Part shown: positions 1 to 54,500 of the stretch, one piece after another
How positions within the stretch are numbered: position 1 is the first letter of the stretch
How the letters are laid out: each line of letters starts with the position of its first letter
Assembly (NCBI RefSeq): GCF_037042905.1
Contig: NC_087247.1
Location: forward strand, 31,310,001 to 31,374,000
Direction of reading: 5' to 3'
From: Lytechinus pictus
Lineage: Eukaryota
DNA: 64,000 nt
Notes under the pieces: generated by a model
Database searches by the model: none
Told to the model about the DNA's origin: nothing
The model's input: the letters and a program-made list of their open reading frames with translations, nothing else
Made by a program: the position numbers and the translations under genes

Positions 1-961
1 GAAAAAAAAGCTTGCTTTTAAAATCCATGTTTTCTGGTGACTACGTGCCTATTTCAGGCTTGCTGATTTACTATCGGAACTATAAAAAAAAGATTCTGAG
101 AAAAAAATCAAAATAGGCCCTATATATTTTAAACAAGAATGTTATACAAATAAAGAAAGTTGTGTAAGATTTATCAAAATAATTAAAAGTGCATCATTTT
201 AAAACAGTATTCCGATGATGGAGCTACATGTAGTAGCTCCATGTGCTGTTGTATTACATGTACATCCCATCGCGTGATGCAAATTGATATACAAGAACTG
301 TAAATGCACACATATTCGTGCAAAGCTGCAGGAGCCCATTTTTTTAAAGCAGTATTTCTGCATTTATTAATAAATCAAAATTACAAATTTATAACAATGA
401 TATAAAATCAAACATACATACTGATCAAGTTACAAAGGTGACAATTGTATAGTAGTTAAGTAGATATATAGACATAATATTCATGTAAACAATAACAAAT
501 GAATTTAAATGCAGAGGCCAGCTATCGTAAGCTGAAAGCTTGAAATAATAGCAGCCAGGGGAAAAGAGGCTACATGGAAACCATAATAAAAATACCGGGT
601 CTTTATTATTTAAAAGTTGTGTCACTTATATTGATAGTGCAACTGCATTTTGTGGTAATTTTAAAAGATGGATAGGTTACCACAGGTAACCATTGGTATT
701 TTTAGAATTAATTATAGTCCTACAATATCAAACACTTGGACCTGTATTCCACATGTAGGCCCAAAATAATTTTTGATTTTTGAGGGCTACTTTTCACATT
801 CTGCCTAAATTTGCAATATCGAATTTGAATACCGGTATATATATTTTAATATATTTTAACATTGCAGTGATTTTCAGGGTCTCTTTGTTTTATTTTTCCA
901 GGGCTCTTTTTATCAATTTTTGAGAAAATTGCCCCAAACGCCGTGTAATTTCACCCTGAGC

Positions 962-1256
962 TGTATTCTGAAGTCGTAGACCATGTAACTCTATGCTAAA
1001 ATTAGGAGAAGCCAAAAAAGTTAATTTTTAATATTATATGTTTTCCTAATTTATTTTGTTTCCATGCTTTAATGATGAAGAAAACTATTTCATTTATTTT
1101 TCCCAGAAAGTTATGAATTATTCAAGTGTCAAAATGAGTTGATAGATTGAACCTGTGCTATTAGTTAATACAGATCCGTTACAATCAATTTGACTATCCA
1201 TGGTTAAATCACAACATTAGAGACCCAAGTTTGAATTAAATCAGAGTTTAGAGTAC
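962..1256 (-). mobile_element. Degenerate inverted copy of the 24481-24799 MITE
   Basis: Collinear by eye with the reverse complement of 24481-24799 (GTATTCTGAAGTC..TAGACCATG..CTAAAATT..GAAGCCAAAA..ATGAAGA..TTATGAAT..GTCAAA). Confidence 0.65.
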
Positions 1257-1554
1257 ATTTATAAACCATAGGTTTTTTTTTGGATGATTTGATGAAAAAG
1301 TCAGATTTTGATAATCGTTTTGTTTCAAATTTTAATATCCCATTAAAAAAATGTTAATAGTTTAGCAGTGAATTAATAGTGAACATGTACATGTACTTGT
1401 AGGGTCCATGGTTAGATCAACTTTAGTTTAAAAAAAAGTACATGTACTCACATCTCACAAAAACTTGTTTTGAAGTATACAGTAGCCTACATATACCTAT
1501 ACCATAAATTATTATACACTTTACAGTGCATACAGTATTACAATTTTTATGCAC

Positions 1555-2460
1555 ATTATTCATGTCGACGCTTGGATATTAAGAGACCTTTCGTTTTCTG
1601 CAATGAGCCATGTGGACGTACGAGAATAAGGAATTTTGGAAGCTCTGCGCATGTGTGAAGTAATCTGCGACGAGCCCCCTCGTTCACTGCCCAAATCTGT
1701 GACTCGTTGAGGGTTTTGACGTTTGGTGTCGAAGTGCTCGAATCAGCGCTAGGTGACACATCCTAGCTTAGCAAAAATGAATGAAGCCGCATCAACATTT
1801 CGAATTTTAGTGATTCAGCAGGCTGGTAAATGGGAAGACATTGCTTGTTACCAGCTTTTCCATCACATTTCTTGTGTCATGTTTTCAGCAACTACATATC
1901 TGGTAGGTAATTCATGTTCTATTTCCAAACATCTGTATTTTTTGGGGGCTTTTGCGCCACATTTGCACACCCAGCTTCCAGAGCTCAGCTTGCGACAGCG
2001 CTCAGCGGGCATGGCAGCCTGACTCTACCAGGGTTGCGGCGATTAACTCCATCGAGATCCGCTATTCATGCATCTCTCCTCAAAATACATGTTTTCAGTG
2101 TATTATCATAAAACTGTGGAAGTTATGTATCTCCTGATATCATTTTAAATTGTTGTATACCGGTACACTGTGGGATTCATATTGGTACATGTTCTCACTA
2201 CGTAAAAATGTTTTCAACTTTCAAGCATTCAAAGAGTGCAAATGCTGCACCCTCAAGTCGTTTTCTGCAACTACGCCTGATCCTCCGGCCGAGCATTGGC
2301 TCATGGCCTGCTCGCTATCATGCTGGTCTATGCTGTGGCCTAGTACGGGTAAGTCGACTGAAATTGAAACTGTTTTCATCATTGTACGAACGTGATACTG
2401 AACGAGCGGTGTCACCACTTCCGGTCAACTAGGACTACATCGCAGTTGTAGAGAAACAAA
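1555..2460 (+). promoter_or_regulatory. CpG-rich promoter and probable non-coding first exon ending at 2348
   Basis: Sharp local rise in CpG density. NRF1-like TGCGCATGTG (~1646), ETS CACTTCCGG (~2416), consensus donor CGG|GTAAGT at 2348/2349. Confidence 0.55.
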
Positions 2461-2962: not shown

Positions 2963-2988
2963 TGTGTGTGCCTGTGTGTGTGTGTGTG
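2963..2988. repeat. (TG)n microsatellite, interrupted
   Basis: Direct reading. Confidence 0.8.
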
Positions 2989-5900: not shown

Positions 5901-8900
5901 TGAATCAATGAACCATATGCAGCATGGTTTATTTATGGGATTTCAAGAATATATTAGGGTTTCAGGAGTCCATAACTTGAAAATCCACTAAATTACCACT
6001 TCCCTATTAAACATTTTGAAAAAATAAATGGGTATTTAAATATCAAACAAAAATTTACTTTTCAATTTATGATGCCAACATTCATATTGCAGTTAACAGA
6101 TGAGATTCCTATGGGCAAAGCCCGGGGAGGGCAACATGGCAAATGTTTACCTCATTGGTCTCGGATTGAAAGTAGCGAGCGAAATGTGACTTATTTATCT
6201 GCTAAAATGTCTTGTATAGGTAATGATACAAAATGTGTGTTTTATTGGATAAATTTTACATGAATATTTGTTTGGGTTGTAAGATGGATAGTTTTTGTTT
6301 CATTTGTAATGCTTAATATAAAACCACTTCTCAATAGTCATATGGCTGAAAATTTTAGGATAGAATCTTTGTTTACTGCTTTTTTGTAATTTTTACCCGT
6401 GAATTTGTATCTAATTGATATTACATGTAGGCCTACTTTGTATTATGTTTGAATGCAAATGAAATGGTGAATTGAATGTAACTGATATCCAATCATTATT
6501 TATTTGTATTATGTGTTTGAAGGTCCCCTGAGAAAGAACCTAAAGAAAACATTACAGAAATTAAAGGTTGCTTTAATAGGCCTAGGCCTATATGTTTTTT
6601 TTTCACAAAGAATGGACAGATAAAAATGAATATTAGTATGTATATTCAACATCCACTACAAAGGTTGTAATGTTAATAGCTGACACTGGAGTATTAATAG
6701 CCCTTTTATCACAGGCTTATATGAAGAAAGCTTGAAAAGAATAATGCTCTTACCTTTCCAAGTACTACTCTGTTGATATACCCCTTTAAAACGAAAGGTG
6801 GACAATGAACCATACCAACCATGCATGACTCATATGAAGATGACAAGACCTGTTTACACGGGGGCAGTGTGATGGTCAGCCCTCCTTTGAAATGACCATC
6901 GATTATATAGACCCCTGCTTCCTGACCTCAAAGCACGCATGCATGCATATATAGGCATTAATCATTCAGGGGATCTATGGTGGCTCTTCTGATCTTTTTT
7001 TACACAAATTATTGATTACTTTTTACCAGTATTAAAGATCTCATGCTAGTTGGACTGCTTTATTATCAAGGAGGCTAGTACACCAGCAAGTAGGTGGTAT
7101 ACAGTATGTCATGTTAATCATTCAGATAAAAAGATTAATAGACATGCACATGACATCATAACTTTTGAGACAAATGGTAAGTTTATTATATAGGGCATCC
7201 ATGTGGAATGCACACATGACAGTGAATTTACGAGACCAATGGTAAATTTGGTGACACGGTATACGCTATATGCTCCTGTGACATTTTCTCTGGTCTTAAT
7301 ATCTCAGAGGGCATGGGGTTAGAGTTAGGATTGTAATAGAGTTTTTGGTTCAGAATAATGCAAACCTAATGCAAAGATAAGGATTGGGATTTTGGAGGTT
7401 TGATTTTAGGTATGGCTTTATAACATGCATTGTTCATCAAATGGAGCAATTGTCGCCACAGCGAATGTCATGGAATCATGAATTTACATATGTAGACCAT
7501 ACATGCAACTACATAAAAACTGGAGAAGGAATGGTATAGGCCTATACTGAAAGTGGGATATCAATGCAAACTGGAGATTGCATTTCCCTGATTCATGTAG
7601 GTTTATTACTTTTTATCATGACTTGTAAAAGGTGAGTGATTAGTAAAATCTTTGCACATAGTGAAATGTTCTTTTCTGGTATTTTCGCCACATTTTGCTT
7701 CCTCAGAATTTGAGTAAGGTCTGTTCATGGCTTAAATTTTTATATTCTAGGACAAGGTTGCTTTTCTCTCCAGGGCACATTTCTATAATACAGGACACAT
7801 GGAAATAATTAAAAAGGCCAGCCAAATCTCCTAGAATGTTTTGTAGAAAATGATGATTGTACAGAGTAATTAACCTCACCAGTGATATTTATTGTACATA
7901 CATGTACATGTATATATTTCAGTTGCTTGCAGCATGAATTGCTTACATGTATTGTAGGCCTACATGTACATATAGCGTGAACGTTTGGAGATGTTCATGA
8001 CCTTGATATTTGATCGTAGCCAGGAATAGATGGAACGGAACGAACCCTCTGATACCTCTCACGCCCTTTTCATGTCCACATACCAGTGATACCATGATCA
8101 GTCACAGTCACATTCCTCTAATCACCCCTTTTGTCCGCCATTCTTTGTCGGCAATCGACGATCAAACATGAATGTGTATACTGGAATGTACATGTAGGAT
8201 GGGGGTGTATTGACATTTTCATTGATCGGAGGTCAAACCTTGTTCATATGTACGCTAGCTCTCCATATAAAAGAATGTTGTGCTAGGGCTAATTACGGAT
8301 GTAATCTTGTCAACTATGCAAATCAATGAATGGGTGTTGTAAATTCAACAGTATTATGAAAAATATGCATCAATTCACTCATAGCACCCTTGAAAATAGT
8401 ACTGCAAAACGACTGTAATATTTTTCCCAGTAAACTCCTACCATCTCCCATATATATATTACTGTTGTGGCATTTTATATTGTGGTAATGTTAATATGAA
8501 CAGGGTATATGGTAGGTGATTATTGAATTCAATCATTTTCACATCACATTTAATTTTGTTAAATGCTGAAAATGTATGTACCATTTTGCTGCTGTTATTT
8601 CTGTTTTATAGTAAAAAACAAATTTAGAATAATTTCATACTTTTGTAGTGCGATTTTGTCATTCTCAGCTGATTGCATCATTCTACCGTAATTTACATCC
8701 CTATATATTGTAACAAACTGAAAATCATCGAAGAGCGATGGATAGCTCTATAAACTCTAAAAATAACAACAAAAACAACAACAACTGAGCATCAAGGTAG
8801 GTCCTTTGTACAGTAAACCTATATTTCTGCAACCATTGCAGCATTCAACGCAAAATATATATTCTTTGGTGCATTGTGTCATCAATGCAAATTGCTGAGT

Positions 8901-10437: not shown

Positions 10438-11675
10438 TTAATACAGAACAGGACTGAAGAAAGCAATGATTTGTTTTTATTAAGTGCAACCAAGCTTCAA
10501 AAGTCAGAGTCAAACACTGGCAATAGATAATGCAGAACACACATTGAAGTCATTCCCTCATCAAGAAATTGTAATTGCGTAAAAATGGCACCCTTGTGAT
10601 GAGAATTCTTATTGCAGTCAAATAGAATATGAGGGAAATGACGAGCAAAAGCAATCCAAGATTGATAACCGTTCACGGTTCCGTGCCCATGAGCAAACGC
10701 CAGGCATGTTTTCACCATCATCCCCCCACCCTCATTACGTCGCTACGTCACAATGTAGCACTGTGTAAATTCTATTGGGATGGTTATTAATGGTTCTACA
10801 TCGGTGCCATGGTTCTGCTTGCCTGCAACACGAGCGGGGGATGCATTCGTCTTTGCTGGCAAATTGGTCATTGGATGAAGGTGTCATCCACACTGCCTGG
10901 ACACTCGTAGCTTGACAGCCCGCAAGGGGATCCCATTGCATGGTTTTACCTAGGCTTACGCGTGTCTCTCCCCTGCCATCTGATCCGGGTTGTCTCTGAT
11001 TGATTCGCTCTGTCATCCGATTCCATACGAATGAACGGGAGATGGATTTGTTCATGCGCAGTGGACAAAACAGGGTGGGGTTTTCATATGTGGTTTCCTC
11101 TATCTGCGTGAAGAATTACCGAGATGATAATTTATCACGTATCAAATTTAAAAAACAAAAATATGTACAGTGCGCAGTGTGAGTTCAGAAACAAAGTTTA
11201 CTTGAATGGTTTACTCTTTGATATTCGTCAATAATTATCAAAATGAACAATGCAATAATATGATAAAGGATAACCTTATGAAATTTAGTGAAAAAAATGA
11301 TGTAAAATATATTGATTTATAATTGAAGCTACATCCGTACCAATTCAAACTGTACAATAGACTGGAAGCATATTAAATCAAAGAAAAAAAATCAAATAAT
11401 GGAGTAGATTATTTGATTGAACCCTAATGGTTATCACATTATACTTGGTCTTTGACAAAGTTTTCCAGTGTGGCCCTTGTCAAAATATTGTGCATGTACA
11501 TGTAGCTCAGGTTAATCTTACATACATGTCATGAATCGCTATTCACAAGAAATCAGATGTTTTGAAAATGGCTGAAACTAACATTTATTAAAATCCAACA
11601 TTGACTTGATGAAAACGAATAAAATCATACATGAAGGACAGACACATCAGTACCCTTTTGTAAAAAAAACCTGAA

Positions 11676-11677
<2 letters not shown>

Positions 11678-11708
<31 letters not shown>
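11678..11708. repeat. (TA)n microsatellite
   Basis: Direct reading. Confidence 0.95.
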
Positions 11709-11710
<2 letters not shown>

Positions 11711-11821
11711 AATTAAGTTGGGATGTATCAAGTTTAGGGAAAGTGCTCGATGTTTCAACTGAAGCAGAGCGTTGTAGAAATTTTCCTCACCTCTGGTCTA
11801 CATATATATATATATATATAT

Positions 11822-12040
11822 GGAGGTGCCGTGGCCGAGTGGTCTAAGGCGCCTGGCTATACATGGAAAGTCCGGGGTTCGATCCCCGGCCGCGGCACCT
11901 ATGCCCGTGAGCAAGGCATTTAATCTACAAAGCTCTTTTATCCTGCTTTCAAATAAATGGAAATGCTATATGCATTATTGGTAACTAGGTGTGCACTTGT
12001 TTAAATAAAAATAAAAAAATAATAATAATAAAAAAAAAAA
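11822..12040 (+). mobile_element. tRNA-derived SINE with an A-rich tail, inside a (TA)n tract
   Basis: A box TGGCCGAGTGG, B box GGTTCGATCCC, GCCCGTGAGCAAGGCATTTA core, A/AAT tail. Confidence 0.85.
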
Positions 12041-13199
12041 TATACATGTATATATATGTATATATATTAATAATTTTTTTTTTTTGGGGGGGGGGGTTCT
12101 GGCCCTCCCAAAATGTTCCATGACCAGGAAAATACAAAAGAAATATTAGTAGGAGAAAGTGAGAGAAAAGCTAGGGAAAATGGTGAAATATTGTAATATT
12201 TGTTGAATTTTATGTCAAAATATATTACAGAATTAGAATTTCATTTTAAGAAAGGCCAAAATTTTTGCTTGCTTGCTTGCTTTGATCGCTCATTGCTTTT
12301 TAGAATTTTTCCCACATTCACCATGATGTGCCCCCTCAAAAATTTAAGCCCTTTATGCCACTTACTCGAACCGTGATGAAAAATAAATTGAAAAACAATA
12401 TATTCACACTATGTGGCTATCTATGTTCATGTGATTGTTCCTGTACATTGCCTGTGTATTGTACATGATAACATCTGGTAAATCATGGGTTGTATAAAGA
12501 CAACATGGCGATTGATATTAATGTGGCTCTCTTTGTTGATATGATATCCAATCAATCTTCTTAAGTACATGTAGTTCATAATTTTACTCTCCCATATGCG
12601 GTTAGGCATGTGACCTCATATATGTCACACAGTTTCAAAGAATTGTATAGATTTTACCTGCCTAGAGGGGGCAGGCTGCATATGTACTATGTTTTTTTTT
12701 AATTGAGACTTTCATGTAGGTACCAACTGGATACTGTGTGTAACAAATGTTTAAACATACATTTGTATTTGAAAAAGTACTCACTACTAATAAAATACAA
12801 CTCAACTGAAAGAAATATGATCTACTGACAAATTATTATAAAAATACAAATTTTGCAGGAGAAGTATTGTACATGTACATGTAGATGATATCTCCACAAT
12901 TATTCAATCCTCTCCATGTATTTTTTTAAACCTTATAATACATGCAGAGTACATATTTTAATTATATCTAATTGAAGGGTTAGGAAGAGTGTTCTTTTGT
13001 AGCGCAGGGTCTCAGTATAGATGCTGTGAACCTGATTCCCCTGTCATGCGTGCATAACATACACATTGCCAAACACATAGAGCTAGCAGTTCCCTGGCGT
13101 GTACACTGACTGACTGGCAAGCTAGCGAGGTACATGTACATGTAGGCATTCATGCGATTCCTCTTGGTTGTGAACGTTTCACTGTGATCACTCCCTCCT

Positions 13200-13535
13200 C
13201 ACTCACTTGCCATTCAGTTCACCCACTACATGCACTGGAGTAAGGAGCTGGTTGTAGGAATCCCGTGCCCGTGAAATTTGATTGTGTGTCGCTGGTACCC
13301 AGAGAGCGATTGATATTGCCCATTTCCCCTCGAGGAAACAAATCGGCAGAGGTGATGTTGCGTTGATGATGATGATGATGACGGCGATGGTAGACTGGGC
13401 TTAATCTTCTGTGCTTTCTGGGGATGTTTATACGCATGAGGAGTAGTATTATTATTGAGAATAACGAGTGCACATGCTAAATCCACTAGAGGATTGAGGA
13501 AAAATACTTATTGCAGAGATTACACAGTTTTACAG
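13200..13535 (+). other. Candidate alternative non-coding 5' exon
   Basis: GC/CpG-elevated block with a (GAT)n tract ending in donor CAG|GTCAGT at 13535/13536; start approximate. Confidence 0.3.
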
Positions 13536-15664
13536 GTCAGTTGTGCTGTTTTGGAATGGATAGATGAATGGGCTTCTATTGCTCTTGCAACAATTGGAAA
13601 ACATATAGGAATATTTTTCAGAGGCAATGTTTAAAAGCTTTCCCTTCATCTGGGCATATTGATTGAAATTTTGTAAGGTTTGCTACCAAAATATAATTAT
13701 GGCAGACTTTAAAAAATTAGCATAAAAAGTAAGCCTACAAGTTAGTATTTTCATGGATAATTATACATGTGCATGTAAATATGCATCTAATTTTTCTACC
13801 TCATTGGCCTGGCATGCGAAGAATGGGAATTTTACAATTATATACTGTACATGTGCATGTATACTATGGAGATATTATCTGCATGAATATTTCCATGGAC
13901 ATACATTTAGGCCGACATATACATGTATGTGATATATATGGTTTGTAACCTTCTTTTGAAATAGTCGATGAATATGCTCTATTTTGTCAGAAGGCATATA
14001 CATGTATGTACACATTGAGGAAATACACCACTGTAATTACCTCTGTTGAGCTCTACTAGTACGAATGTATATGTCTGCACATAAATGGTTGCAGTACATG
14101 TGATGGAAGTGTTCACCTACACAAATATACAAATGCCTGCACTGTTTACCCTGAGTAAAGAATTTGAGGAATTTGTCATCACCTCCCCAAATTTTATGCC
14201 CTTGGGGGATTGGCTAAATCCCCAATACCACTCCTGGCCTTGGGTAAGGACAAGAGGTCAACTAAGGTTAGATAAGGTCAGATGAGGTCATAGTCTGCGG
14301 ATTGTTTGTGATAATGAGTATATTCCTTTTGTTATTGTTTTGTGGTGCTTGACTGAAAACAAGCACAATTGTATTGTTACAGACATGTTTGTGCCTGTTG
14401 TGTTTACTTGAGCATGTCCCCCTGTCTGGTAATCTGAGAGCGCATTAGATTTTGTTTCTCTCTTTTCTGAAATCTTACCTGAATTGATTCGCAGTTCCAT
14501 CAAGGTATTAAGTCCTTGTTCCATGATGAAATTGTTGACAGTCATGTCATAATAGCCTATCTCTTTGTGCTTGTACTCATTGTTACATGGAGCCTTTGTA
14601 TGTTCCGTTTTCATGATATAGGCATATTTCATATTATAATCTAGAGAAGTTCCTACAAGAAACATTTAAAGGTATAAGCTTGTGTATTAGAGAGATTACT
14701 ATGTAGATCATAACTAGAGTAGAATGAACATGATCTACCGGGTATGTACAATTTTCAGAATCTCAATGAAAATTAACATCAGTAATTGTATGTGGATATA
14801 ATTGTGAAAGCACCGGTATTCCACATGTACATGTATATTTTCTTTTCGTTTTCCTCATTAGAAACTACTCTATTAATTCACCAAATTGCCAAGATGATAA
14901 ATACATGTTCTGTATGGAGAGAGAGTGGATGAGAGAGGAGGAAAGAGGGAGATAGAGGGGACTTTGTCTATGCAATATCCAATCAATATCACACAAGACT
15001 GAACACACACCCGCACACACTGCATAGAGACGGGCTGATACTGAAACCTATTTTAGTTGGTAAATGAAAGTGGAGATGGGATGGCAAGCGTTTTGTCTTA
15101 TTTGTTGACGAGGCCGCGGATGCATGTTACCCGAGTTGCTGCTAGAAGGGAGAGCGTTCAGGAGCTCGGAGGTCACGTTTAATGGTGGAACTTGGTCGAA
15201 GCGAGGATAGGGTTCAAATATATGTAAATAGGCCTACTGTGCATTTGTGTCTTGGTATTGCTTACTGTACAAAATTACTGGAAATACATATATCATTATT
15301 ATTACTTATTCTGCACTTTTCCCCAGATAGGCTAAAATACTTAAAATATACAGTGTTCATGTACACCTATCTACACTGTACATCTATTATAGATAGATAG
15401 ATCACTGGTTTATTGAAGAAAAATACAATTATTATGAGTTTCCACAGAAAGACATGGCCCTACAAATACGCAAGTTGATATTTTGAAGTAAATTACCTTA
15501 TCGCAAATTCAATTTATATGTAAAAAAATAAACATTCTGTAATGATAATAAAAAAAAATATGGTAGCACATTACACTTTATATAGGAGGTCTACCTCCAT
15601 GCACTGATGTTTGTACTGGTTTATCGCTCTGTGAGCAACAGTCCAGTAGGTACCTCCATTTATA

Positions 15665-16483
15665 CAGTGCGTCCCACAAAAAACGCAACCGAGATTTATC
15701 GATGATTTATCATAACTTAATCACAAATACATTAGACAAATGACCTACCATTGTAAAGCTTAGAATCTCCTCTTTCATCTGAAATTACTTAGATTATTTC
15801 TCCTTCACGCATGAGTGAGCAAAAAGAATTTGAAGAGGGGATACCAAAAAGTCACTTGGCGGGCTGTATCTGGGTTTCAAAAAGAAAACCACATTTTTAA
15901 AAAGTTCAATATCTGCTCTTTAATTTGATACCTCAACTACAGAAAATGGTCAAGAAATAACAAAGTTCTGGTTATTTGAAATAAGGCTTGAATTTCAACA
16001 ATTTCATAATATGAAGAAGTTTTACAGGCTATTGTCCAGACTCACTCGAGACTCCGTTTTGTTGACGATCAGCCATGCATTAAGTCTTTTGTTAACCGTG
16101 CGATAGCTTCGGTGGGAAACCTGTGAAAACACGTTTATTTAATGAAATTATGGAAATACAAGCATTGTTTCGAGGAACATAACTTTTTTACTTCTTGACC
16201 ATTTTCTGTGATTAAGGTATTAAATGAAAGAGCAGATATTGAACTTTTTAGGCATGTGATTTTCTTTTTGAAATTCAGATACCCCCCGCCAAATGAGTTT
16301 TTGGTATCCTTTCTTCAAATTGTTTTTGCTCACTCATGCGTAAATGAGGAATATTCTAAGTAATTTCAGATGAAAGAGGAGATTCTACGCTTTACGTTGG
16401 TAGGTCATTTGTCTATTGAATTTATGATTAAGTTATGATAAATCATCGCTAAATCTCGGTTGCGTTTTTTGTGGGACGCACTG
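15665..16483. mobile_element. Tc1/mariner-type foldback MITE with long imperfect TIRs
   Basis: TA|CAGTGCGTCCCACAAAAAACGCAACCGAGATTTA ... TAAATCTCGGTTGCGTTTTTTGTGGGACGCACTG|TA. Inverted similarity extends about 350 bp. No ORF. Confidence 0.92.
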
Positions 16484-16971
16484 TATATGTTTCAATTTGA
16501 AGAGAGGATTACCTGAGGTCACTTTTCAGGGAACTAACTTCATGGGCTCTTGCTATTATTGCACACCGTGAATCTCTTCCCATAGGACCAGGCAAAAATA
16601 TATATATATATTATTTATTTCCGGGGGCTACTTTTTCCCAAACCTACTGGCTGAATATGCTACAGTGGGGAAGCTTCAACATTTACAGTGAATGAGAATT
16701 TTCAAGGCTCTTTTGACCATTTCGGTTCGGGCGAAATCGCCCTGAGCCTCCATGTAATTTCTTCCTGCATAGGGCCACATGCACGGGGATTACCTTGAAT
16801 CCTACCGTTTTTATGATAAAAAATATTAGAAATGTTATTATCAATAATATACATGTAGTTGTGGAGGTGTCATGGTGTAGTGGTTCTGACTCTTGCCTCT
16901 CAATCAGAGGGTCACAGGTTCAAATCCTTCAGCAAGAAAATGTTGCCCACAGTGTGCTGCACTCATCTCTG

Positions 16972-17150
16972 GTGGGTGTTTCATAAAGCTGTTAGTAAGT
17001 TAAGAGCGACTTTAAGAACGACTGGTGATCCTTTCTTACGCGCTAAATAATCACCAACAAATAATGGTGAACGTCATTTACCACAAGAAAGGATCACCAG
17101 TCGTTCTTAAAGTCGCTCTTAACTTACGAACAGCTTTATGAAACGGGCCC
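16972..17150. mobile_element. ~180-bp hairpin MITE (Harbinger-like, CWG-type flanks)
   Basis: ~60-bp near-perfect arms GTTTCATAAAGCTGTT..TAAGAGCGACTTTAAGAACGACTGGTGATCCTTTCTT; flanks CTG/CAG. Confidence 0.9.
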
Positions 17151-17159
17151 CAGGTGAGA

Positions 17160-17360
17160 CATATCCTAATCCTACATTTACCCCCACTGCCCTCCTGTCC
17201 ACCTTGTTTATATGCTGGTGATTGTTGATGCTGTGTGTATTTTATAAAAAAACTTTTCAATAGTTTCCATTTTTCTCTATGTCATTTTCATTCTTGTACG
17301 TATTGTATATTGTTTTTATATTGGTGAGAAAATAAACAAATTGAACTTGAACTTGAAAAA
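17160..17360 (+). mobile_element. LINE (CR1/L2-like) 3' tail
   Basis: T-rich 3' UTR-like sequence ending AATAAACAAATTGAACTTGAACTTGAA. Confidence 0.5.
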
Positions 17361-18448
17361 ATTGATACCCAGTAGGATTTTTTCTGTGAATGCTTTATGG
17401 TGAATGCCTGTATGGCTGCTCAGTTAAAGCCAGAAAACTGAAACAATGCATCACAGTAGACTACATACTATGTGCATATATAGCTTTGCGATATAAACAG
17501 GGAATAATTTCACTTCTCAAATTCTATTAGCGTTTCTGGTTGTGAGAGAAATGCTTTCAAGTAACTGTGTTCTGTACGTCCTACAGTGTACATGTATGTA
17601 AAATATTGCTTTGTGGAGCACTTGTAAAAAAGTGTAGAGCAAATTGTGATGCGATATATATCAGGAAAATTACTCCCTGATAAATGCATCTACTATTATT
17701 ACGATTATTATCATTATGATGGAAACACGGAGGTATCTATTTGATAGACTCATCTTGCTGACTCAGTCTCGCTAGCTCGCTCTCTCGCTCGCTGTGCCGT
17801 TTGGGAAGGTTAATGTGGTAGTGTGGGGAATGCATTAACCAGCTGATGGGATGTGATCTGTGAATGTTTCAGCATGCTGACTCACCACTCTATAATTTCT
17901 CTTCAGATGACTTTGGGCCCAATAGCGAGCCTTGCCGTGTAACCCTCGACTGGGGATGGGTAAAAATAGCAGAATTAATCCAATGATTGTAGATGAATGC
18001 ATAGCTGTGCACGGCATAAGTAATGATTATGGGTTTTAAAAAAAATGCAACAGTTGAATTTGCTGACATTGTGAAATGAACGAGGAGGAATGTGCCATTG
18101 TATCGTTAACTTTGCTATTGTTTGGGACAGATATTTTCAGTCGGAGGCTGGCTACATTCTGCATGTTGAAAATTATATTTTGTAAATGATCATTGATTTA
18201 TTGTGTTTTGTCAGCTTACAAGGGCTTTTTTTTACACAATTCTTTGCCTTTGTGGATTGTTGTTTCCATTCCATGTAGGATTTGGAGTAATTCATGTTTT
18301 CTAAATTGTTAATTAGCATTGATATCATCCAATGTATAGCTATTATGATGATCTCTAATAGTTTGGTTATTCCATTTCCTTTTTTTTCTCCTTGAAGGAC
18401 TATGATGTTGCCCGACTGCAGGTGATCTGAGTCACCATTGTAATCGCC

Positions 18449-36500: not shown

Positions 36501-39500
36501 TTTGGGAAATTTAGGGGCAATTTTGGTTGTGATGAGGGCAAAATCTCCCTACTGTCCACCGCCCATATGTATACATGTCCTACAGCACTATTCATACCTT
36601 TTAAAATGTCTTAATCCATCCATAGGCTGGGAATAATCATCATTAAAGATCAAAATTCCCATTCCATTTCCCATGTTTGGTTAAATCGAGCTTTCAAAAA
36701 TTCATGGTATGGCTTTAAATCTTCCTGGCATTATAGCTACATCTCGTTGAAGAATGCAATAGGTCCCCAGTGTATTTGCTCGTGCAGTGATAGTTCTGTT
36801 CCTATCATTCATAATACTTGTCAATGCTAAATATAGCCTGTGTGTGGGCTCCACAAAATGGTATATTTCGCATATCATTAATATAAAGCTGTTGCTTTGT
36901 GTAATGCAGCCGAGACTGCCAGGGATGTTTCACTCGTTTCATTTTTTAAGAAACAACTTTTAACAACTTTTTGAAATATTTTATATATTTGTCAGTATTT
37001 GCATGGACCTACAACAAATGGACGTTTAATGAATCCCCAATTTTGAAGCATGGTATATGAGATATTTGATGAACGGTTTCCCATTTTTTTAATCTCAATT
37101 CTCATCCATGTTTATTGATGTTTATAAAATTGCTTATTCATTTTTGCCGAAAATCAATCAAAATAGTATATCCTGTGGTGACCACTTTGTGTGTTGTTCT
37201 GCATCCACTTTGGACTCTGTCACACCGTCCGTAATAAAAGAACTGGAAAGTAGGTTTGTGTGTAGCAGTATACAGCTAAGCCATTTTTCAGCATGAATAC
37301 TATAATGCTTGCACTCCTCGTCGGCCATTGACCCAACCCCCATTAGCACAGCGCAATTGAATATTCAGTGGTTGAAATAGCCGTTGTTGGTAAACTAGGG
37401 AATAGCATTCATATTTTTCAGCCCGAGGCTTCTTTCGACTTTATGTAGCACAACCATTTAAGTTTGCGAGATGGGAGACAGACTTCTATCTACATGTATC
37501 TTTGCATTGTTTTGTGTGTATGTATGGTAGGAAGTCATTAATTGACTTTGATAAAGAATGGACTTGAAAAATGAAATCTGGATGAAGATCAGAATGAAAT
37601 TTGAGGTGTACCACAAATTGATGATCATGCATTTTCTCACGAGAAAGAAGTACATTGTTTTTGAGGTACAATGAAGGAAATGCAATGATCGTGGAGCATT
37701 TCTTTCACTTCTTTTCATTTTAACATATATGTCACATGTATGAAGCATTTTATATTGTAAATGACGTATGGTATAAGATTTGGATAACGTAAGTCATAAA
37801 ATATCAAACAGTGCTTATTTTCATATGAGTATATGTGTTACTTCAATTTCTATATGATAAGATGGGGATATGGATTCTACTCAGATAATTAGCTGAAATT
37901 TACCTATGTGACTAGTCTAATAGGCAGATTTGCTAATGACTGGTACTAATGACTAGTTCTATTGACTGGAAATGGTTTTGAAAACTTTTGAGATTAGGAT
38001 GGTTTATCAAATAACAAGGATCCACATGACTATCTTTAATAGAAAACATGTAATACACATCATTTGCTCTGGCGGTAGAATAGTTACACATGTATACATG
38101 TAATTAATTGAAAACTGTTCTACACATGTACCATTGGTCTATCCACCTGTGTGTCCTCTGTCTTTCTGACAGAACAGGACATCAGAAGCTATACCTTCAG
38201 ATTACCCACCGTCCATTTTTGCTTTCAATCAATTGATAGCACAGAGACAGGTGTACAGTACATCTCTATCAAAATTCAATCCATTCAATTCCTCTTCCAT
38301 TTGTTATCTTCTGCAGGAAAGGGAAGACAAGTTGTACCTAAGGAGGAGGAGCGGCCACCCACCCCGCCCCCAAAACCCAAGGAGCTCCAGCAAAGGTCAT
38401 CATCTACTTCAAGTGCAAGTGACATTAAAGGTATCGGTAGAACTCCGCAGAAACCACAGCATTGGTCATCTCTTTAGAGCGTGTATAATCTTTAACCTGA
38501 AAATGTCCCAGAGGGGGGGGGGGGGGTCGAACCAGTGGATCAAAGCCCCCCCATATTTCCTGCCTCCATTCCACCGCTCCACTCACATAATTTTTACTTT
38601 CAAGTCTCGTATATCCTTTAAAATCTTTTTGTAAGAAAATCAACCCCCATACACCCCTGCCATAGATCAGTAAAAAAAACCTGATCCAAAGATAGTTTTG
38701 ACAAGAGCAGAAATAAAATAGAAACAAATTAAAGGGATGGCGAAAATCTATTGTACAATATCTGAGTTTTGGATTTCCAAGGCCTTGTGATATATCCTTG
38801 GTTTATAATGGAATGGTGTAGATTTAAATTTAACTTGTGATTTTTTTTCAGGTGTGAATGGGGGTTCCGTTGAGGAGTTCCCTGACATCAAACCCCCTCC
38901 TGCCTTCCCTCCTGCCCCGGCTATAGGTATGGTGACAGGAGGTGAGACATCAAGTGTAGCTTCCATGCCAGGTAAGTCATTGATTCACACCAAAGCAGTT
39001 CTTGAACTAATCCAGTTTGGCCCTATTAGGTGGTTTCAAACCGCCTCGATAATGAGAATTCCCGTTAGATTACGAGACCTTTTTTAGGCTAAAAAATACC
39101 CATTAATTATTCCTGCATTCACACCGCCCCGAAACATACCCTATGGGATAAGTTCCTGAAGTTACAAGCATGCGCATTATGGTCTGATAAGCAAGCAAGG
39201 CGCGAGATTCAAAATCACTAGCTCAGCAGCCACCCAAGGCACCCGCGCCCAACTACACGCTAGGCTAGGCGACCTTGGAAAAATCCCCGCGAAAGTTCTC
39301 GTAATTTTGACAAGTACCTACTATTTAGTGGGTATTTTCTTTCGGGAAGATTACGCATAATTTGCTTTCACATTGCCAAAATACCTGGAACTGACGAACT
39401 TCGAGGCGGTCTGAAACCACCTAGTGAGAGGGAAGATACTTTCCCAATGCCCGACATAGAGGGAGATTTTAAAAATCCACAAGATCTCCCCCTTCCACTG

Positions 39501-42500
39501 AAGATCAATTTCAGTTGGCATGCTGCTGAAGTGGTGGATTGTTGCTGGAGGGGGGAGGTCTTGTGACTTGTGATTCTCCCTCTGTGCAGGGCTTTAGGAT
39601 TATACATCAGTCACATTTGCTCTATTGGTGAGTCGAAAACAGTTATTTTAACATTTTTTGTACCAGCTACATATAGATGGTTTGAATATAAATGTGACTG
39701 AGGTTTAAGTAGCTTTCCTCTCACAATGGTCAACCGAATTGTTCTTGAACTAGAAAGAGCAAAATTAGAAAGAATTAGAAATAAGAATTCAGGCCATCAG
39801 TTTCTTATATGTTCCTTTTCTTTATGGAATAGTCACTTCGGCAAAAACAACAAAAGCTATATTGCATTTCCCAAATACATACCATTGGTCAGTTTGGATT
39901 CCGGTTTTGTTGTTGTGACTGTAGCATACAAATTGATTTATCCTGAATTTATGTTCTGATTAGTGAAAGAACTATCTTGCAGTTTTCAGCTCCTGTGTGC
40001 TATTTCATAAAATTGTTTACAAAAAAAACTTTGAAAGAAATTTAAAGTTTGGGTTTACAATTCTGCCGTTGACTTTAACACAAGAATAAAAAAGTAAAAA
40101 TAATCTTGAATTTTCTCTGGTAAAATGTTTTATTCATCAGAGCCTAAGAGTCCTTGTTGAATGTTAACAAAAGTTGGGGAAGTATCCGTTCAAAATATAA
40201 ACCTTTCTCAAGTTTGAGCTCAATATATATGTTGCTTTAATGTAGGCCGGCAAGGTTTCTTTTATTATCTGATAAGATTAATGTATGATGAGAGTGCTGG
40301 ATGCTCCATTGAATTAATGTCTTTTATGTCTTTAATGGGCTTTATGTTCTTGAAATGAAGTGGAAGTGATTTCTCTCTTTAGCTTTGCAAGTTTCATTTC
40401 ATATTCCGTGTCTCAACGGCCATTTTATTGCATATCACTCCATTAGCAACAGCGAAGTATCAAAAGTAATAGTCAAAAAATATTTAACATCATTGGAAAT
40501 TATTCCCTATAGCGGGGCTTTTATACCTGTTTGATCACAAAATACCTGTAAATTATGAGAAATTTGATATTCAGACCTCAAAATACTTGATAATTCATTT
40601 TAGATGTTCATACTGTACAAATCTGAACCAGATAAAATTCCTTAAGCTATATAATAATAGTAATAGCTGGATTTATGAAGCGCTGAGGATACAAAGCGCT
40701 GCCATTATTACCCCAGCTGTAGCTCGAGCTACCTTCACTGGCGGTCAGTGCATTCAAAGAATTAATCCTGCCGGGTACCCATTCACCTCACCTGGGTCGA
40801 GTGCAGCACAGTGTGGATACATTTCTTACTGAAGTGAAACATGCCATGGCTAAGATTCAAACCCACGACCCTCTGTTTGAAAGGCAGGAGAAAGAACCAC
40901 TAGACCATGATGCGCCCACATATGAGCCAGTAAATAATGCTATTGCATTCATTTGATTTAATCCTATTTCTAGATAAATCATAGAGAATTAAGACACAAA
41001 ATAAGTTCCGGATGAAGACATGATTTTTTAAAAATTTTGTATTGTAAACAAAAGTAAGTCTTGATATCAAGAATGAAACTCTGACAAAGTGGCTTACCAT
41101 ACATAAATCAGCATTTCATTTTCTCATTTCATTTCATTTATATCATTTCCAAAAAAATACAAATCTGACAAACACAGTTTGATCAAAAGAAATCAGTTAA
41201 TTCAATAGCAAAATATGTATCATCGTTACTTGAAATAACTAAATAGCAGTATATTAATTACAATCAATAAATGAAATATGACAAAATATAGATTTATATT
41301 TTGTGAAAATGGAGGGATGCACTGAAAAGCAATAGCTTCATAACAATAGCATCAAGGTGTGACAGCCCCTCAAGGTACAGTGATATGAATGATGATGGGT
41401 GGATCGCCATCAGGATATCATTTTAATCCTCCAGCAGAAGAGAATGTCAAGAGTAATTAAGGTCGTCTGAATATTAGCTTCAAATTGGGCAGGCTTGGCA
41501 TGATATCATTATCGTATCCCCTCCAGTGTGGTATAGTCATGAAAACCACTTCACAGTGATGTAGTAGGTCATTAATGCCTCGGAAAAGGGGTTTCTATAG
41601 GTCTGTGAAAATGGGCTCATCCAGTTCATGTCTTGCATTAGTTGGTTTTCGAGTGCCTGATATTACAAACACAGTATGAAGGAATTTGTGTTATTTCCGC
41701 TTTTGGCAGTCAGTCCTTCCAGTGACACTTGTTTGTAGAGAATGAAATGACCCCGGGGGCCACTTACATTGATGAGTGGATGCCATGCGCGACCAACAAA
41801 ACACGTAAAAAGGATGTCTTTTTCAAGAAAGGGCATGTTACGTACGTAACGTAATAAGGGTGTCAAAAACACTAAAATAATGAAAAAAAGGTATCTATTT
41901 CGCGAGGAAAGCTACGTGTTTAGGGTCAAATTTGCGAGGGTATAAAAAATCAAGACTGAAATGTTTTATAAAGGATGTACTTTTTGCCCCAAGAGTCAAC
42001 ACTACGTGTTAAGAGTACAATTTGCGCGAGTGGAGCTGTACTAAACCCGATGATGTAGGTAAAGGTAAAACCGATGACCGACGTCCGTGATATAAGTTAG
42101 GCTAACAATTGAAATATCGCTGTACTTATTTAGGGGTTCGATTCAGGGAATGCTTGCCAATAGTATCGTTTTGTTTCCAATACTTGTTAAGGGTAGGGTT
42201 TCACACACCAATACTTGTTAATGGGTGCATTTTTAGAATATGAAAAATACATGTTAAGGGTGCTTTTTGAGATCTCATGGTTGCGCATGGTATCCACTCG
42301 TCAATGGAAGTGCCCCCCCCCCCCCCCCCCCCGGAAATGACACAAGCCCAACACCTTAAAAGAGTGCATTTCTTACGTTCTTACTCCTGGCAGATGACTT
42401 TATACAGTTAGAAAAACAAAAAGCATTTTCAAAGGCCAAGTTCACACCAACAGTTTAAATTGAATAAAAGAGAAACATCAATAAAGCAAAAGGCTATTAA

Positions 42501-45500: not shown

Positions 45501-48500
45501 TTATGATATTTATGATAATAATTATGACAAATATTAATTTATTAGATGAGAAGAATGGAGGATTTTATTCTGACACAATGTAAGATTTTTTTTTAATAGA
45601 AAAGAAGGCAAGAGGGTGTAAAAGGAAAAATACTGAATTTAACTAATTCATTTTTGTTCAGATGTTGTTGATTGCAATAACCTGTGGATAAGTTAATACA
45701 TCAATACTCCTTAAGGCAAATATATATGTCACTACCAGGAGGCCTATATGTATTTGTATCTATTGCATGGTCAAGGAAATGGATTGACTGCCTGAATTAG
45801 CTGCAGTTCTTTTTACGGGAGTGACCGGTCAAAACTATTGATTGATTGGGAAGGCAATAGAGGCTGTTCTCACTCAGTTCCTTAAACTAGTTTAGTGGAA
45901 ACTAGTTTAGTGGAAACTAGTTTAACGCTAAGTGAGAACGGTCGAAGCGCTCTTGGAAGCGCTCTTCCAAACCAGTTTGGAAGACCACCTCGCGATGTAG
46001 TTTTCAAGATCGCTTCGCATCGGAAAAGTGGTTTTAGCGTAAGTGAGGACACAACCGTTCTTCGGGAAGCGATCTTCGCACATTTTGAGCGCGCTACTCC
46101 ACACGACAGGTGTAGAATGCCTATGCTGCGGTTTCGAATTTCGCGCGAAACGTGTCACCCCACTGAGAGCGTTTCCATAGCAACAAGAGCGCTTTACGTG
46201 AAGTGATTTTGAAAACCACTTTCGTGTGATCAAGTGAGAACGCTAGCAAAGCGATCTTCCAAACTGGCTTTCTGAACCGGTTCCCAGTAAACTAGTTTTA
46301 GGAACGTAGTGAGAACAGCCTCTTAGATGATGATATATGACCCAATATAGAGAGCAGTTGATCCTGTATACAGGCATGACAGGTGTTATAGGGAAGTCAT
46401 CGTCAGAGGAGTAATGGCGCAATCACATTTCTTCGACCGGTACGTTACGGCATGCTGAAAGCAGCTGTTACATTTTTGTACCAGACACATAAAGGTGGTT
46501 TGAATAAAAATGAAGAAAATGGCTGTTTTAGTCTCGCAGTATGGCCGCGGTAGGGAAAATGTGACTGCAGCATAAAGTTTAGTGAATTCACCATATTTAG
46601 GCTAACGCAGAACAAATCTCTACTAAAAACGTCTTTGTGAATTGATTAGCTATCAATAGTCCATATGAATTTTCAGGGGGTTTCGTAACATTTTTTATCT
46701 TCTAGTCCTATCCATATTTTCATAGAAATTCTTATACAGTGCGTATCAAAAAAAAGTTTACACTTAAAAAAATCCTGTAAAATTATACATTTGTAATATC
46801 CTGAAGATTTTTCCACATTTTAACATTGGTACAGATCCATTTAAGCAAATGATGATATAACTGTCGAAAAATATTTCCGCTTGAGTGAGCACCACTTACT
46901 TTTGTAAAGTTAGTGAAAAATGATTTGCGCAGAACTTTGAAATAGTTATGCGAATAAAAGTAGACCTTAATCATGAAGAACACGTTGAATTTAGCTAGTA
47001 AAATTGATTTGAAGATATCTTTTACCTTTTTAACTTGTTTCCTTGCCCAAAACACTTCGAAGAGTGCATTGCGCCCCACCCCACTCCCCCACACACCGAG
47101 GCCATCTTGACGATATTTGCTTTACACTGAGCTGTGAATTACATGAAATGGCTTAGGCTTGATTTTCATTTTGTTAATCATTGTCAAGCTTGGAAAAGGT
47201 GTGGAGAAACAAGTATTAAATAAAAAATGAAATGTAAACCCACTTTAAATGATAAAAAAAATGAAAAAATGATGGAAATGTCTGATATAAACTTTTGTTC
47301 AGATTTAGTTATGTCCTCAGATCCAGCTGGCACAAAAAGGGTAAAAGTTGTGCTTACTAAGTGTTGAAATTTCAATTTGGGTGGCAAAATTGTTACAAAA
47401 TGCTTGAATGTATCTGTTTTATTTCAATTGACTAAAAGTGCAAGGGAAATGTATGAGAAATGTTTCGAAGGGTAAATTTGATTTCACCCTTTCCCCTTGA
47501 CACAGCGTGAAAACAAGCATTTCTGCGCAAACAGATTTCTGCGAGCTTTACAAAAATGGACAGTGCTCACTCAAGTGTAACATTCTGTCATAACTTTTAC
47601 TTTCATTGGATAGATGAGACCCAAACCTAAGATTATATGTGAAAAAATTACCCACATGTTGTATATTTTTTAATTCCCAGGGCTTTTTCAAAGTGTAAAC
47701 TTTTTTTTGATACGCACTGTATAGTGAACAGAGACAAAACAGGACACAGGTCTATTGCTTCAGCTACTGTATCATGTAACAAGACTTCATCAGAACCCCT
47801 CCCCCATGTCTTGCATCATTTGTTGTCTTTATTCTGTCACACTAATTAATTATTTCTCAACAAATCAAATGCATGTAGTACTCATCATCACGGTACATTT
47901 TTATATACCGGTATGTAGGCAAACATTTTTATATGTATTGTACAGTATATAATGTTTTGCGAGAGATGATGTTGGGAGAGATAATTGGTTGCTTTGTGAA
48001 ATGCTTTCACACGACAAGGAATGGGAGAATATCTCTATCCATTTCTGTAGATTTCGTGACATTTTTTGTTCCTCTAGGGTGGACAGAATGACCCTCTTCG
48101 ATATGCCACTGTACAAAATTATAATTTCCAAGGGGGGAGGGGACTTGTCTCCCCGTTCCCCTTGTATGTGCGTCTCTTTCCATATACAACATATTTGAAT
48201 TTAAAAAATGGCAACCGTTTTTAGCTTTATTTCCTTTCGATCAACTACATGTCTAGCATTCTGAGTGATATCGTATGCCTCATCCTTGAGTCATCAATTG
48301 ATATTTTTCTTCGTTTGATATCGCAGAGAATAGTTCTAAGCAAATGGTATTATAATTGACTGATTGCTATACATCACAATCAATATCCGTTTAATCTAAC
48401 AACGTTTTGCTCCCATGTTCCTGTATGGTAGCTTTATCGGTATTGTTGTTAACTGGACGTTTATTTCTTGGAATTTATTGGTATGTGCTTTATGGGTACT

Positions 48501-51500: not shown

Positions 51501-54500
51501 TACAGATCATATATATATATATATGAAAAAAAGCATAAATACAGCGATACGGGTGCTTGACATTCAACGTTCACATGGATTTTCCCAAATTATCATCTTT
51601 GTTCTTTTCTTACGCATTTGAATATAGAATGGAAATGAATTGTGAGTTTACTAGTGTCTATTGAGAGACAGAAATTAAATGGATGGGGTTTTGCTTTTAT
51701 TGATGAGTTTAATAAACAACAATATGGTAATTGATAGTGAGTTTCAGTTTTGATATGTTCTTCCTGCTACATCCATCTACAGTTAAAGACAAAACACAGA
51801 TTACTATGTCCATGCATCGCCATCCAAAATGAATATTGTATGCAATGGCTTTATGATATGATGATATTCTAGCGCAAAACAAGGATGGGTACAAGCCCTC
51901 ATCCCTGTTCCCAAATTATGCTAAGTATGCATGGATGCCTAGAGTACACTTCAACCAATTTGATTTGAAGCTCATCAGCGTGTGGAGACCTTCTCATTAA
52001 GTTTTCATCAGATATGATATGGGGGGTTAGTAAGAAATAATTCATCCCCCTACAGAGCTCAGCGAGCTGATGATGACTAGGTGGTTCCCCATTAGCCCGA
52101 GTGTGCTTAATCCTATTCAGGTTAATCCTATTCGGGTTAAGCGCAAGTTAATACCGACTTGCAAATCAGGCAGATAATCCAAGTTATTGACGTAAATAAG
52201 TTTATCTATATTTGCCACTCTCCACCCAGGTGTAGTAAGTGGGTACCCAGTAGGAATGAATCCCAGAGCACCTGATCAGTGTGGCCGCGGTGAAGCAGGG
52301 GGAATAGATTGCGTCTTCATTAGAAATAGTGCAATACTGTATTTTGTAAACAAGGGCTAATGGAAATGTGCCTTGAGTAACAACACTCTTTAAGGGTGTA
52401 ATTCAAGTTCCTTCCAGGCCATGTACCACAAAAAATACAATCAGTTTTTGAAGCATAACTACACATTGTACGTGTATGTAATTTAAGTACAAAATGTTAC
52501 AATCATTTGTTAATCTAGAGAGTGAATTTGTATAAATTTGTATTTCAACAACCAATAAGGAGAACAGCAATAATATTTTACTTGGGTAATTCTGAGGCAT
52601 TGGTTGTTGTTTATATGTTATATGTTTCCTTTAGAGATTTGCTGCCATGTCATTGTACCTTGTTGTACATGTATGTTCGTGAAAAATAGAATAAACATTA
52701 ACATAAATAAAGGAATATTTGATGAATAGAGATTCCATTACCTCACACATTCTTATGCACCCATTATGCAACAACTTTCTATTCATGAAACTCTTTACGA
52801 TATTGTCGCTGACATTTTTCGAGGAGACACGCCTATGTATTGAAGTCATGGAGCCGATACCTCTTTAGCTATATACCCAGGGAAATAGTAGATAGCCTAG
52901 CCCTCCTTGTTATTCAGGTCAGCTAAAATTGCATTCATTAGATGTTTTTATGGAAGGGCTGCTTACGTAAAAGAGGGAGGCAAATATGAGTGCGATGCTG
53001 TAGGAAGCATCCTGAGTAGGATAATGCCAGCAATATCGATGCCATTATTTGAGATATTGCCAATTTACGAGAAACTAACCTTCTGAGAAGGAGAGTTTGT
53101 TTTTGTGTGGTTTTTTTTTTCTAATGCAGTTTCATCAAGACATTTTGATCAGGAAATGATAAAATGTCAATAATCTATCGAAAGTATCTACCCTTCATAC
53201 TCCATTCTTCCTTTCATTTTTGTCATCGTCAATTTTAAGGTAGTTCACAATTAGATCTATTATTTTAAGGTGCTTATGAATGCATGTATCGAAGAAAGAG
53301 TTTATGTTCTTGTGTTAAAGTCCAAATCCACTGCAACAATGATTTTATTTGAATAAAAGAAAAAAAAATCAAACAAGCATAATGTACAATTTCATCTAAA
53401 TCGGATATAAAATAAGAAAGTAAAAGAATTAAACTTTGTGTAAAAACAATTTGAAGCGTATCCTTGCCTGTATGCAAAGAAGGAGCTGGTATTGTACATC
53501 ACTCATTCACTGTTTCTTTTGTAATTTACTATGGAAATATCAATGTTGATAGTTTTGATGATAAAAAAGAATCTCTATCGAATCACAATAAATTATAGTC
53601 ATGGTGATTCTGCAGTTTCCATGAGGAATCAAACCATTTCCTACATTATTTTACGGGGGGAAAAGGAAAAATAAGAAGTTTTTCACAAAGATTAGTCTGA
53701 CTAAAAATTGAATTTAAATTCCCGGCTTTATGTAGTTTGTGACGTACATTATACCACGTATCATCAAAGAATAAGATAACACATTTAATAAAACTCATAT
53801 GCATGTTGGCACGTCAGCATAACTTGCAGCAGTTGCAGTAGGCTTTTTGAAACAACCTACCTCCCCTGATCAAGTGTATCAGTAGCATCCACCCTACTTT
53901 CTCCCTCTCCACCAGCAGGAAAATAAATCTTTGTTTATTAATAACATCAGACTGCGTAGGTAATAAATTTTCCTCTGTCTATGGCAGTTATTTGTAGGAA
54001 ATATCTGTTTTCTTTCCTATTCCTCTTCAGCTTATAGTCCTCAATGTAGCTGGAGTATCCTTTTCTTAAAGGACAAATTGCGTATCCTTGATGTTCACTT
54101 CTCTAAAGTATTTGTGCAAGGCATTCATGTGCAATTTATTAAATACTTTTCTTGGTTGAAAATATACAAAAGCCTGATTATGGCGATCCACAGATTTTAT
54201 ATGGGAGAGAAATAATTATGCTTGGTTAAGGTGGGGCAAACTATCACTACTGATGAGATTTTGCTTTTTAAAAAGAAAGTATTAAAAACAACTTTTAATA
54301 CACTTCACACAAAGAGTTCATGGGCCACAGTTGTAAATCTTTGGAATATTAGGGCTCCCACAATAGATTTGGTGTCAGAGAAATGGAAGCTTTTATATTC
54401 TCTCATCAGACTTATAACTCACTCAGACTGAAGTATATCTCAGTGTCATTATGGGGCAAAACTTATTTAAACTTTAAAATCAATGTTTTCTTAATTTTCC

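Follow-up and report, generated by a model that had tools for sequence, protein, structure and literature searches.

Excision scars of cut-and-paste DNA transposons are textbook material, and they are normally encountered one by one in assays, or as rare and untidy events when species are compared. Minos, a Tc1-family element, is reported to leave in Drosophila a 6-bp footprint made of four terminal bases plus TA (net +6), the four bases coming from one end via a mismatched heteroduplex. The transposases of Tc1/mariner elements make their cut on the non-transferred strand a few bases in from the tip, which produces 3′ overhangs; after end joining, 2-4 terminal bases stay behind between the duplicated TAs (PMC6943129). 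In C. elegans, the scars of Tc1 read TACATA or TATGTA in ~75% of somatic events, that is, a +4 product in which one overhang is kept (PMC12632400). The Sleeping Beauty scars, TACAGTA and TACTGTA, are likewise built from TA, terminal bases and TA by end joining of 3′ overhangs (PMC6943129). In rice, comparative genomics has brought to light natural, fixed excision traces of Stowaway/Mariner elements; these are heterogeneous, with deletions of ~18 bp on average and fillers, and nothing but the duplicated target site remained after only 8 of 94 events (PMC4423477, PMC4561436). Here, we analyzed 64 kb of the Lytechinus pictus genome (contig C3, 31310001-31374000; G+C 36.6%), hereafter the window, which includes part of a TANC-like gene and in which two octamers, TACATGTA and TAGGCCTA, recur far above expectation. 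We put at roughly 0.78 the probability that both are fossil excision scars of TA-targeting cut-and-paste transposons of the Tc1/mariner type. The mechanism itself is known, but its form here, a +6 scar in which both ends persist, and its scale are unusual.

The scars would arise as follows. An element would insert into TA and duplicate it. On leaving, its transposase would cut the non-transferred strand two bases inside each end, and each flank would keep TA plus a 2-base 3′ overhang, namely CA and its complement TG or, in another family, GG and CC. Germline end joining would fill in and ligate both overhangs, giving TA-CA-TG-TA, a net gain of 6 over the original TA. Both TAs of a scar would then be open to re-use by later elements, yielding arrays in which TAs are shared, mixed arrays included, and point mutation would later erode the scars. 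We infer in this scheme an element at each site, a 2-base stagger and fill-in repair. Keeping both 2-base overhangs implies that TACATGTA would derive from a CA..TG element and TAGGCCTA from a GG..CC element. In contrast to Minos, the tetramer here is best read as two bases per end. C. elegans Tc1 shares with the present case the TA target, the CA..TG ends and the terminal two bases left between duplicated TAs (PMC12632400), but the worm +4 scar keeps one overhang whereas the +6 scar here (TACATGTA) keeps both. Sleeping Beauty offers two further points of likeness, since the octamer flanks resemble ANNTANNT, its integration consensus (PMC8934666), and TACAGTA was found here at a hot site of a miniature inverted-repeat transposable element (MITE). 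It differs by its three-base stagger, its annealed overhangs and its +5 product, and its scars are familiar from assays on transfected cells or transgenic animals rather than from a fossil layer across a genome. As regards rice, natural and fixed traces are common to both cases, but the heterogeneity seen there contrasts with the one uniform dominant product seen here.

TACATGTA was found 52 times in the window, from position 225 to position 52673, and 26 of these copies lie within the first 18 kb. The first-order Markov expectation for the window is 1.7; in 200 simulated sequences the mean was 1.8 and the highest count 8. By count, TACATGTA ranks second among the 8-mers of the window, poly-T being first. 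A preliminary description of the window had listed TACATGTA at 225, 255, 1388, 1439, 2756, 2855, 4565, 6422, 7899, 7944, 7961 and 8189, and had estimated about 20 or more copies in the first 18 kb against about 2 expected per window. All these positions hold, 40 more were found, and the estimate agrees with our counts. Genome-wide, 224,046 copies were counted in 812 Mb, that is, 17.7 per 64 kb, and TACATGTA is the most over-represented complex 8-mer of this genome. For TAGGCCTA, the window contains 10 copies vs 0.5 expected, and the genome 66,473 copies vs 3,425 for the reversed word. Together the two words amount to ~290,000 octamers, or ~1.7 Mb of inserted sequence; 0.36% of the ~62.7 million TA sites in the genome bear a CATG scar and 0.11% a GGCC scar. 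Because the 52 TACATGTA sites of the window have mutually unrelated flanks, they do not belong to one repeat family. Contigs from two other public runs were identical to the window over 13216-15520, four octamers included, and this perfect match rules out an assembly artefact.

The enrichment was confined to a few words. We counted all 256 TA-NNNN-TA words against a Markov background in a 358-kb pool made of the window, 200 kb of random genome sequence and the flanks of 29 repeat copies. Simple repeats aside, only TACATGTA (16-fold) and TAGGCCTA (10.6-fold) were strongly enriched in this pool. Enrichment was weak for TAGATCTA (3.4-fold) and TACCGGTA (3.3-fold), and in the same pool none was seen for the remaining TA-flanked palindromes or for hybrid words with one end of each kind, such as TACACCTA. 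In the window, TACCGGTA occurs three times (830, 2158 and 47906) against 0.2 expected and TAGATCTA five times (27372, 28193, 28590, 34331 and 53252) against 1.1 expected. The preliminary description had noted the recurrence of these two words, and the positions were confirmed, but the enrichment is merely ~3-fold. Likewise, its view of non-coding DNA saturated with TA-flanked palindromes stands for TACATGTA and TAGGCCTA but not for the class as a whole, the other words being weakly enriched or not at all. One-mismatch neighbours of the octamers were enriched 2.6- to 3.8-fold, matching the expectation from decay.

Comparison of repeat copies indicated how the octamers came into being. The TAGGCCTA at 24696-24703 lies in a copy of a high-copy repeat and owes its six extra bases to insertion at a TA that was originally bare: ACATAGGCCTACAAC in the window corresponds to ACA-TA-CAAC in all 29 paralogs compared (L022-L050), which do not have these bases. 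Since 29 of 29 paralogs carry the bare TA, the hexamer was inserted after the repeat copy had landed, with nothing to slip on. CATGTA was also found at consensus TA sites in two other copies of the same host-repeat family. This repeat (24560-24830) has at least 2,693 candidate copies that are 92-94% identical to the window copy, ends in ...CAGAATACGGGCC and continues 5′ past the examined stretch. We used it as a first recorder family, comparing across copies the spacing between two anchors. There were 364 copies at consensus spacing and 123 with +1 to +12 bases; of the ~6 insertions of six bp, ~3 placed CATGTA or GGCCTA at a TA of the consensus. The second recorder was a segment of a Tc1-like MITE, of which 15 copies carried +4 to +7 bases; among them were five with CATGTA and one with CAATGTA, all at consensus TA. 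A single MITE site, GACC-TA-CC, bore CATGTA in at least nine copies, and because both arm variants are represented, it must have been hit independently at least twice. The same site also gave TACAGTA, the Sleeping Beauty-type scar, in two copies and TACAATGTA in one. The CATGTA frequency at GACC-TA-CC was ~0.2% of copies, near the genome mean of 0.36% of TA sites.

A broader survey was made of 122 octamer sites in 264 kb. Nine of these had paralogs in the sample, and five of the nine showed a clean 6-bp gap leaving TA. A self-BLAST indel census of the same 264 kb returned four 6-bp events, a number too small for use, although two of them were the CATGTA or GGCCTA hexamers. One case in the window was ambiguous: the TACATGTA at 28117-28124 is 6 bp longer than a local paralog at ~28430-28648, and with CATGTA already in place beforehand, slippage and a scar explain it equally well. 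The preliminary description had proposed a search for insertions at ancestral bare TA sites; such insertions were found for both CATGTA and GGCCTA, and in two repeat families.

The junction itself also varies. Reversed-word controls mislead for words that hold TA, TA being depleted and AT not, and we used instead a second-order Markov expectation and an off-centre control. Variants with one more base at the centre, TACA(C/G)TGTA, were counted 23,868 times genome-wide, or 2.5 times the expectation, whereas the off-centre control, TAC(G/T)ATGTA with its complement, was counted 14,107 times, or 1.0 times the expectation. Among deletion variants, enrichment was confined to the centre ones, TACAGTA and TACTGTA, and these heptamers were mildly enriched (81 observed vs 54 expected). 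All 17 sampled TACAGTGTA sites lay in unrelated contexts, some of them joined to CATGTA units. Variation limited to the CA-TG joint is expected if two processed ends were joined, but not from a decaying unit or from a motif bound by a protein.

Octamers were moreover found joined to each other through their TAs. The mixed array TACATGTAGGCCTA at 6422-6435 is made of two unlike hexamer units with one TA in common, and a second mixed array, TAGGCCTACATGTA, occupies 7955-7968. Double units are TAGGCCTAGGCCTA at 6577-6590 and TACATGTACATGTA at 7899-7912, the latter again at 12870-12883 and 13131-13144. A triple array at 23109-23129 reads TA-CATG-TA-CATG-TA-CACTG-TA, its last unit being the centre +1 (3+2) variant, and at 17582-17596 the 3+2 variant TACAGTGTA is joined to a CATGTA unit. 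Genome-wide, TACATGTAGGCCTA and its complement total 2,421 copies vs 7 for the reversed word, 5.1 times what independent events would give; the corresponding excess is 6.8-fold for the double GGCC unit TAGGCCTAGGCCTA (478 copies) and 11.7-fold for the double CATG unit TACATGTACATGTA (9,353 copies). Scar TAs are therefore re-used 5-12 times above chance. Resident MITEs make use of them too, their ends lying on the TA of a TACATGTA in 34 cases vs ~17 expected. The preliminary description had described the fused octamers at 6422-6435, 7955-7968 and 6577-6590 correctly, and its idea that footprints offer new TA targets and thereby build arrays accords with all these excesses. Three MITE ends with an identical TACATG-TA flank on the same strand were also noticed within 20 kb (C3:68818625, 68824375 and 68837951); they probably reflect a local segmental duplication.

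We then considered which elements could have left such scars. The bases between the octamer TAs equal the ends of resident TA-flanked inverted-repeat elements, the GG..CC case being the weaker. An 819-bp Tc1-like MITE with TA on both sides lies at 15665-16483; its perfect inverted ends of 18 bp start with CAGTGCGTCC, and its family (ends CAGTGCG) has at least 3,242 intact ends genome-wide. A related MITE of 983 bp, also with TA on both sides, lies at 46737-47719 with ends starting CAGTGCGTATC; in both MITEs the ends open with CAGTGCG. The GG..CC type is represented by a 393-bp element at 39029-39421 (ends GGTGGTTTCAAACC, TA on both sides), whose family has ~1,000 intact ends, with TA in front of 75%. 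The genome contains further TA-CA..TG-TA families. One of the samples contains a 1,896-bp Tc1 element (L007:2226-4121; C2, ~15.0 Mb) with perfect 18-bp inverted ends, TA-CACTACTCAAAAAAAGTT, and an uninterrupted 347-aa frame with HTH_Tnp_Tc3_2 and DDE_3 domains, which, judging by its sequence, may be an active autonomous element. As to target context, octamer flanks (n=448,092) have A at -3 in 51.3% of cases vs 34% in the background and T at -1 in 14% vs 32%. This signature remains once array-like flanks are removed, and the footprint-bearing sites of the recorder families, two per family, also have A at -3. Octamer flanks thus resemble ANNTANNT, yet they differ from the stronger preferences of two resident families. 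For this mismatch the CAGTGCG and GG..CC families were dropped as main donors. The elements at 15665, 46737 and 39029, which the preliminary description had put forward as matching the octamers, do exist with their TA flanks, but they are probably not the main donors, and older or other families would be needed.

Collectively, these data support the core idea of the preliminary description for TACATGTA and TAGGCCTA, namely that the octamers record the terminal dinucleotides of TA-targeting families. Insertion at bare TA, mixed arrays, variation at the centre only, resident elements with the appropriate ends and a Tc1 transposase gene all speak for it.

Several observations weigh against an origin by excision. 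Retention of both overhangs is not the usual reported outcome for Tc1 or for Sleeping Beauty. The C. elegans-type +4 scars TACATA and TATGTA were not enriched (377 observed vs 367 expected), and none was present among the insertions of either recorder family. The target preferences of the resident families form another difficulty: the CAGTGCG MITE sits mostly in TA-TA (position -1 is A in 76 of 100 insertions and position -2 is T in ~75), the GG..CC family prefers C-A-W before TA, and most octamer flanks show neither the TA-TA nor the CAW-TA pattern. The terminus of the GG..CC family is odd in itself, as its pattern is not fully explained by simple TA duplication: GG follows an A in all of the 100 ends listed, and the position preceding this A is T in 75, A in ~18 and G in ~5. 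Counting is affected as well. The recurrence of CATGTA at one MITE site could partly reflect subfamily inheritance, and part of the 224,046 copies multiplied inside repeats and are not separate events. For instance, a ~157-bp tandem repeat carries TACATGTA or TGCATGTA in each unit (L017:3900-4700; L001:9690-10000; L008:6816-7025). Finally, no site was seen with an element in one copy or allele and a scar in another; in the comparison of public-run contigs with 11400-17399, all the indels listed lay in high-copy repeats, and the MITE was spanned by none of the contigs.

Some of these points would suit a TA-specific insertion other than ordinary 2+2 excision, for which one may think of elements with CATG or GGCC ends cut with a 4-base stagger, whose self-complementary overhangs would simply religate and so account for the uniformity, or of aborted integration or disintegration by a transposase, where end bases would be left although no resident copy had ever been there. 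The scars are unusually uniform, both tetramers are self-complementary, the resident families mismatch the octamer flanks, and the usual +4 scars are missing. However, no TA-CATG..CATG-TA or TA-GGCC..GGCC-TA element was present in 338 kb, whereas elements with CA..TG and GG..CC ends were, and the occurrence of TACAGTA and TACA-N-TGTA at the same sites is in keeping with separate processing of the two ends. We consider such an origin unlikely. A foldback or P-nucleotide origin, that is, an inverted copy of the flanking TACA, was rejected as well, since GGCC has no source in the flanks and palindromes are generally not enriched.

The arrays raise the question of whether (CATGTA)n and (GGCCTA)n are simply self-complementary hexanucleotide microsatellites growing by replication slippage or hairpin formation. 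Most tested origins were without a pre-existing hexamer, mixed arrays are abundant, single units vastly outnumber arrays, and new units at bare TA were seen, if on a small scale; moreover, the TA..TA phase is favoured 2.6- to 3.7-fold over another phase of the same repeat. Because ancestral sites are bare TA and unlike units re-use TAs above chance, slippage cannot be the primary cause. In particular, the bare-TA origins and the 2,421 mixed arrays show that insertion was not restricted to places where the hexamer already existed. It is nevertheless true that double CATG units exceed independence by 11.7-fold vs 5.1-fold for mixed ones, that ~12% of octamer flanks continue the repeat as ATG, and that the hexamer was already there at 28117. 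The extra ~2-fold for CATG doubles may point to some slippage, or to more CA..TG families, but as a general account of the octamers the microsatellite reading is very improbable. It is more improbable still that TACATGTA and TAGGCCTA are selected binding sites or structural motifs, for example in the large 5′ intron region of the TANC-like gene. Palindromes do suit dimeric DNA-binding proteins, and the octamers are unevenly distributed: 49 of the 52 TACATGTA lie in 1-38200, where they take up 1.6% of TA sites, and 3 of the 52 in 38201-64000, a 10-fold drop in density beyond 38.2 kb although TA density is alike, while the window as a whole stands at 3 times the genome mean. Against selection, 224,046 and 66,473 copies are spread across all chromosomes, the octamers entered single copies of young repeats by insertion, words one mutation away from them are enriched like those of decaying neutral sequence, and no binding logic is apparent in the centre variants and mixed arrays.

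Patchiness was also observed in the first 340 kb of contig 1, with 34, 12, 19, 25 and 10 TACATGTA per 64 kb; local hopping, germline chromatin and sequence age are candidate causes. Regarding the timing of the proposed excisions, the first recorder family lies ~4% from its consensus, and over ~4,000 TA sites surveyed, 3 scars were seen vs ~5 predicted by a steady birth-and-decay model. This suggests that scar formation continued into the recent past, as a rough estimate from very small numbers.

In passing, we made some observations on other repeats. Two further families were tried as recorders and set aside. One, in L013, contained CTAGCACC and other words and was rejected as a dispersed recorder, being one tandem array. 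This satellite (L013:1-8200; C4, ~5.0 Mb), with units of ~75 bp (TCACTCTATACTAGCACCTTAATATGCCC...), fills most of a 10-kb sample and explains several top-enriched 8-mers of the pooled data. The other was the TTAA-flanked foldback family at 25609-26215, whose copies were too diverged. It is ~600 bp long, has ends TTAAAGGACAAGTCCACCCC and TTAA-like flanks, and is common in the sample (also L018:4054-4673, L006:5366-5994 and L008:8421-8926); from its sequence it looks like a piggyBac- or Kolobok-style MITE. Two copies of the 24560 family (C14:22057306 and C16:9322807) have in common a 4-bp insertion, CACAG to CACATGCAG, at a non-TA site, which would either mark a subfamily or reflect recurrent insertion of the palindrome TGCA.

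Elsewhere in the window, runs of G or C are abundant, with 30 GGGGGGGG and 20 CCCCCCCC vs ~0.2 expected for each, and a run of 20 C extends over 42313-42332. On the plus strand, a 613-aa open frame without a Pfam match occupies 56243-58084, in a stretch of 47% G+C with many CAG/CAA repeats. The AAA-lid exon of TANC (62890-63705) follows downstream, and the frame may represent a low-complexity exon of this gene.

If the excision reading is correct, the ~290,000 octamers might make up a readable ledger of germline cut-and-paste events in which one uniform both-overhang product dominates and whose traffic seeds composite (CATGTA/GGCCTA)n arrays, a wider claim that we hold to be about evenly balanced. 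No report of such a genome-wide signal turned up in full-text literature searches, which is weak evidence of novelty. The scars may outnumber the surviving donor elements, and they would count past excisions directly, whereas surviving copies record insertions only. K-mer counts alone could then date and quantify past DNA-transposon activity and germline end joining in any genome. The scars would also offer a view of how the germline repairs transposase breaks, by fill-in joining with both overhangs kept, and they would make transposon traffic a source of in-frame 6-bp insertions and of new short tandem arrays. For motif discovery they carry a warning, as a hugely enriched palindrome in this genome most likely reflects mutational scarring rather than protein binding.

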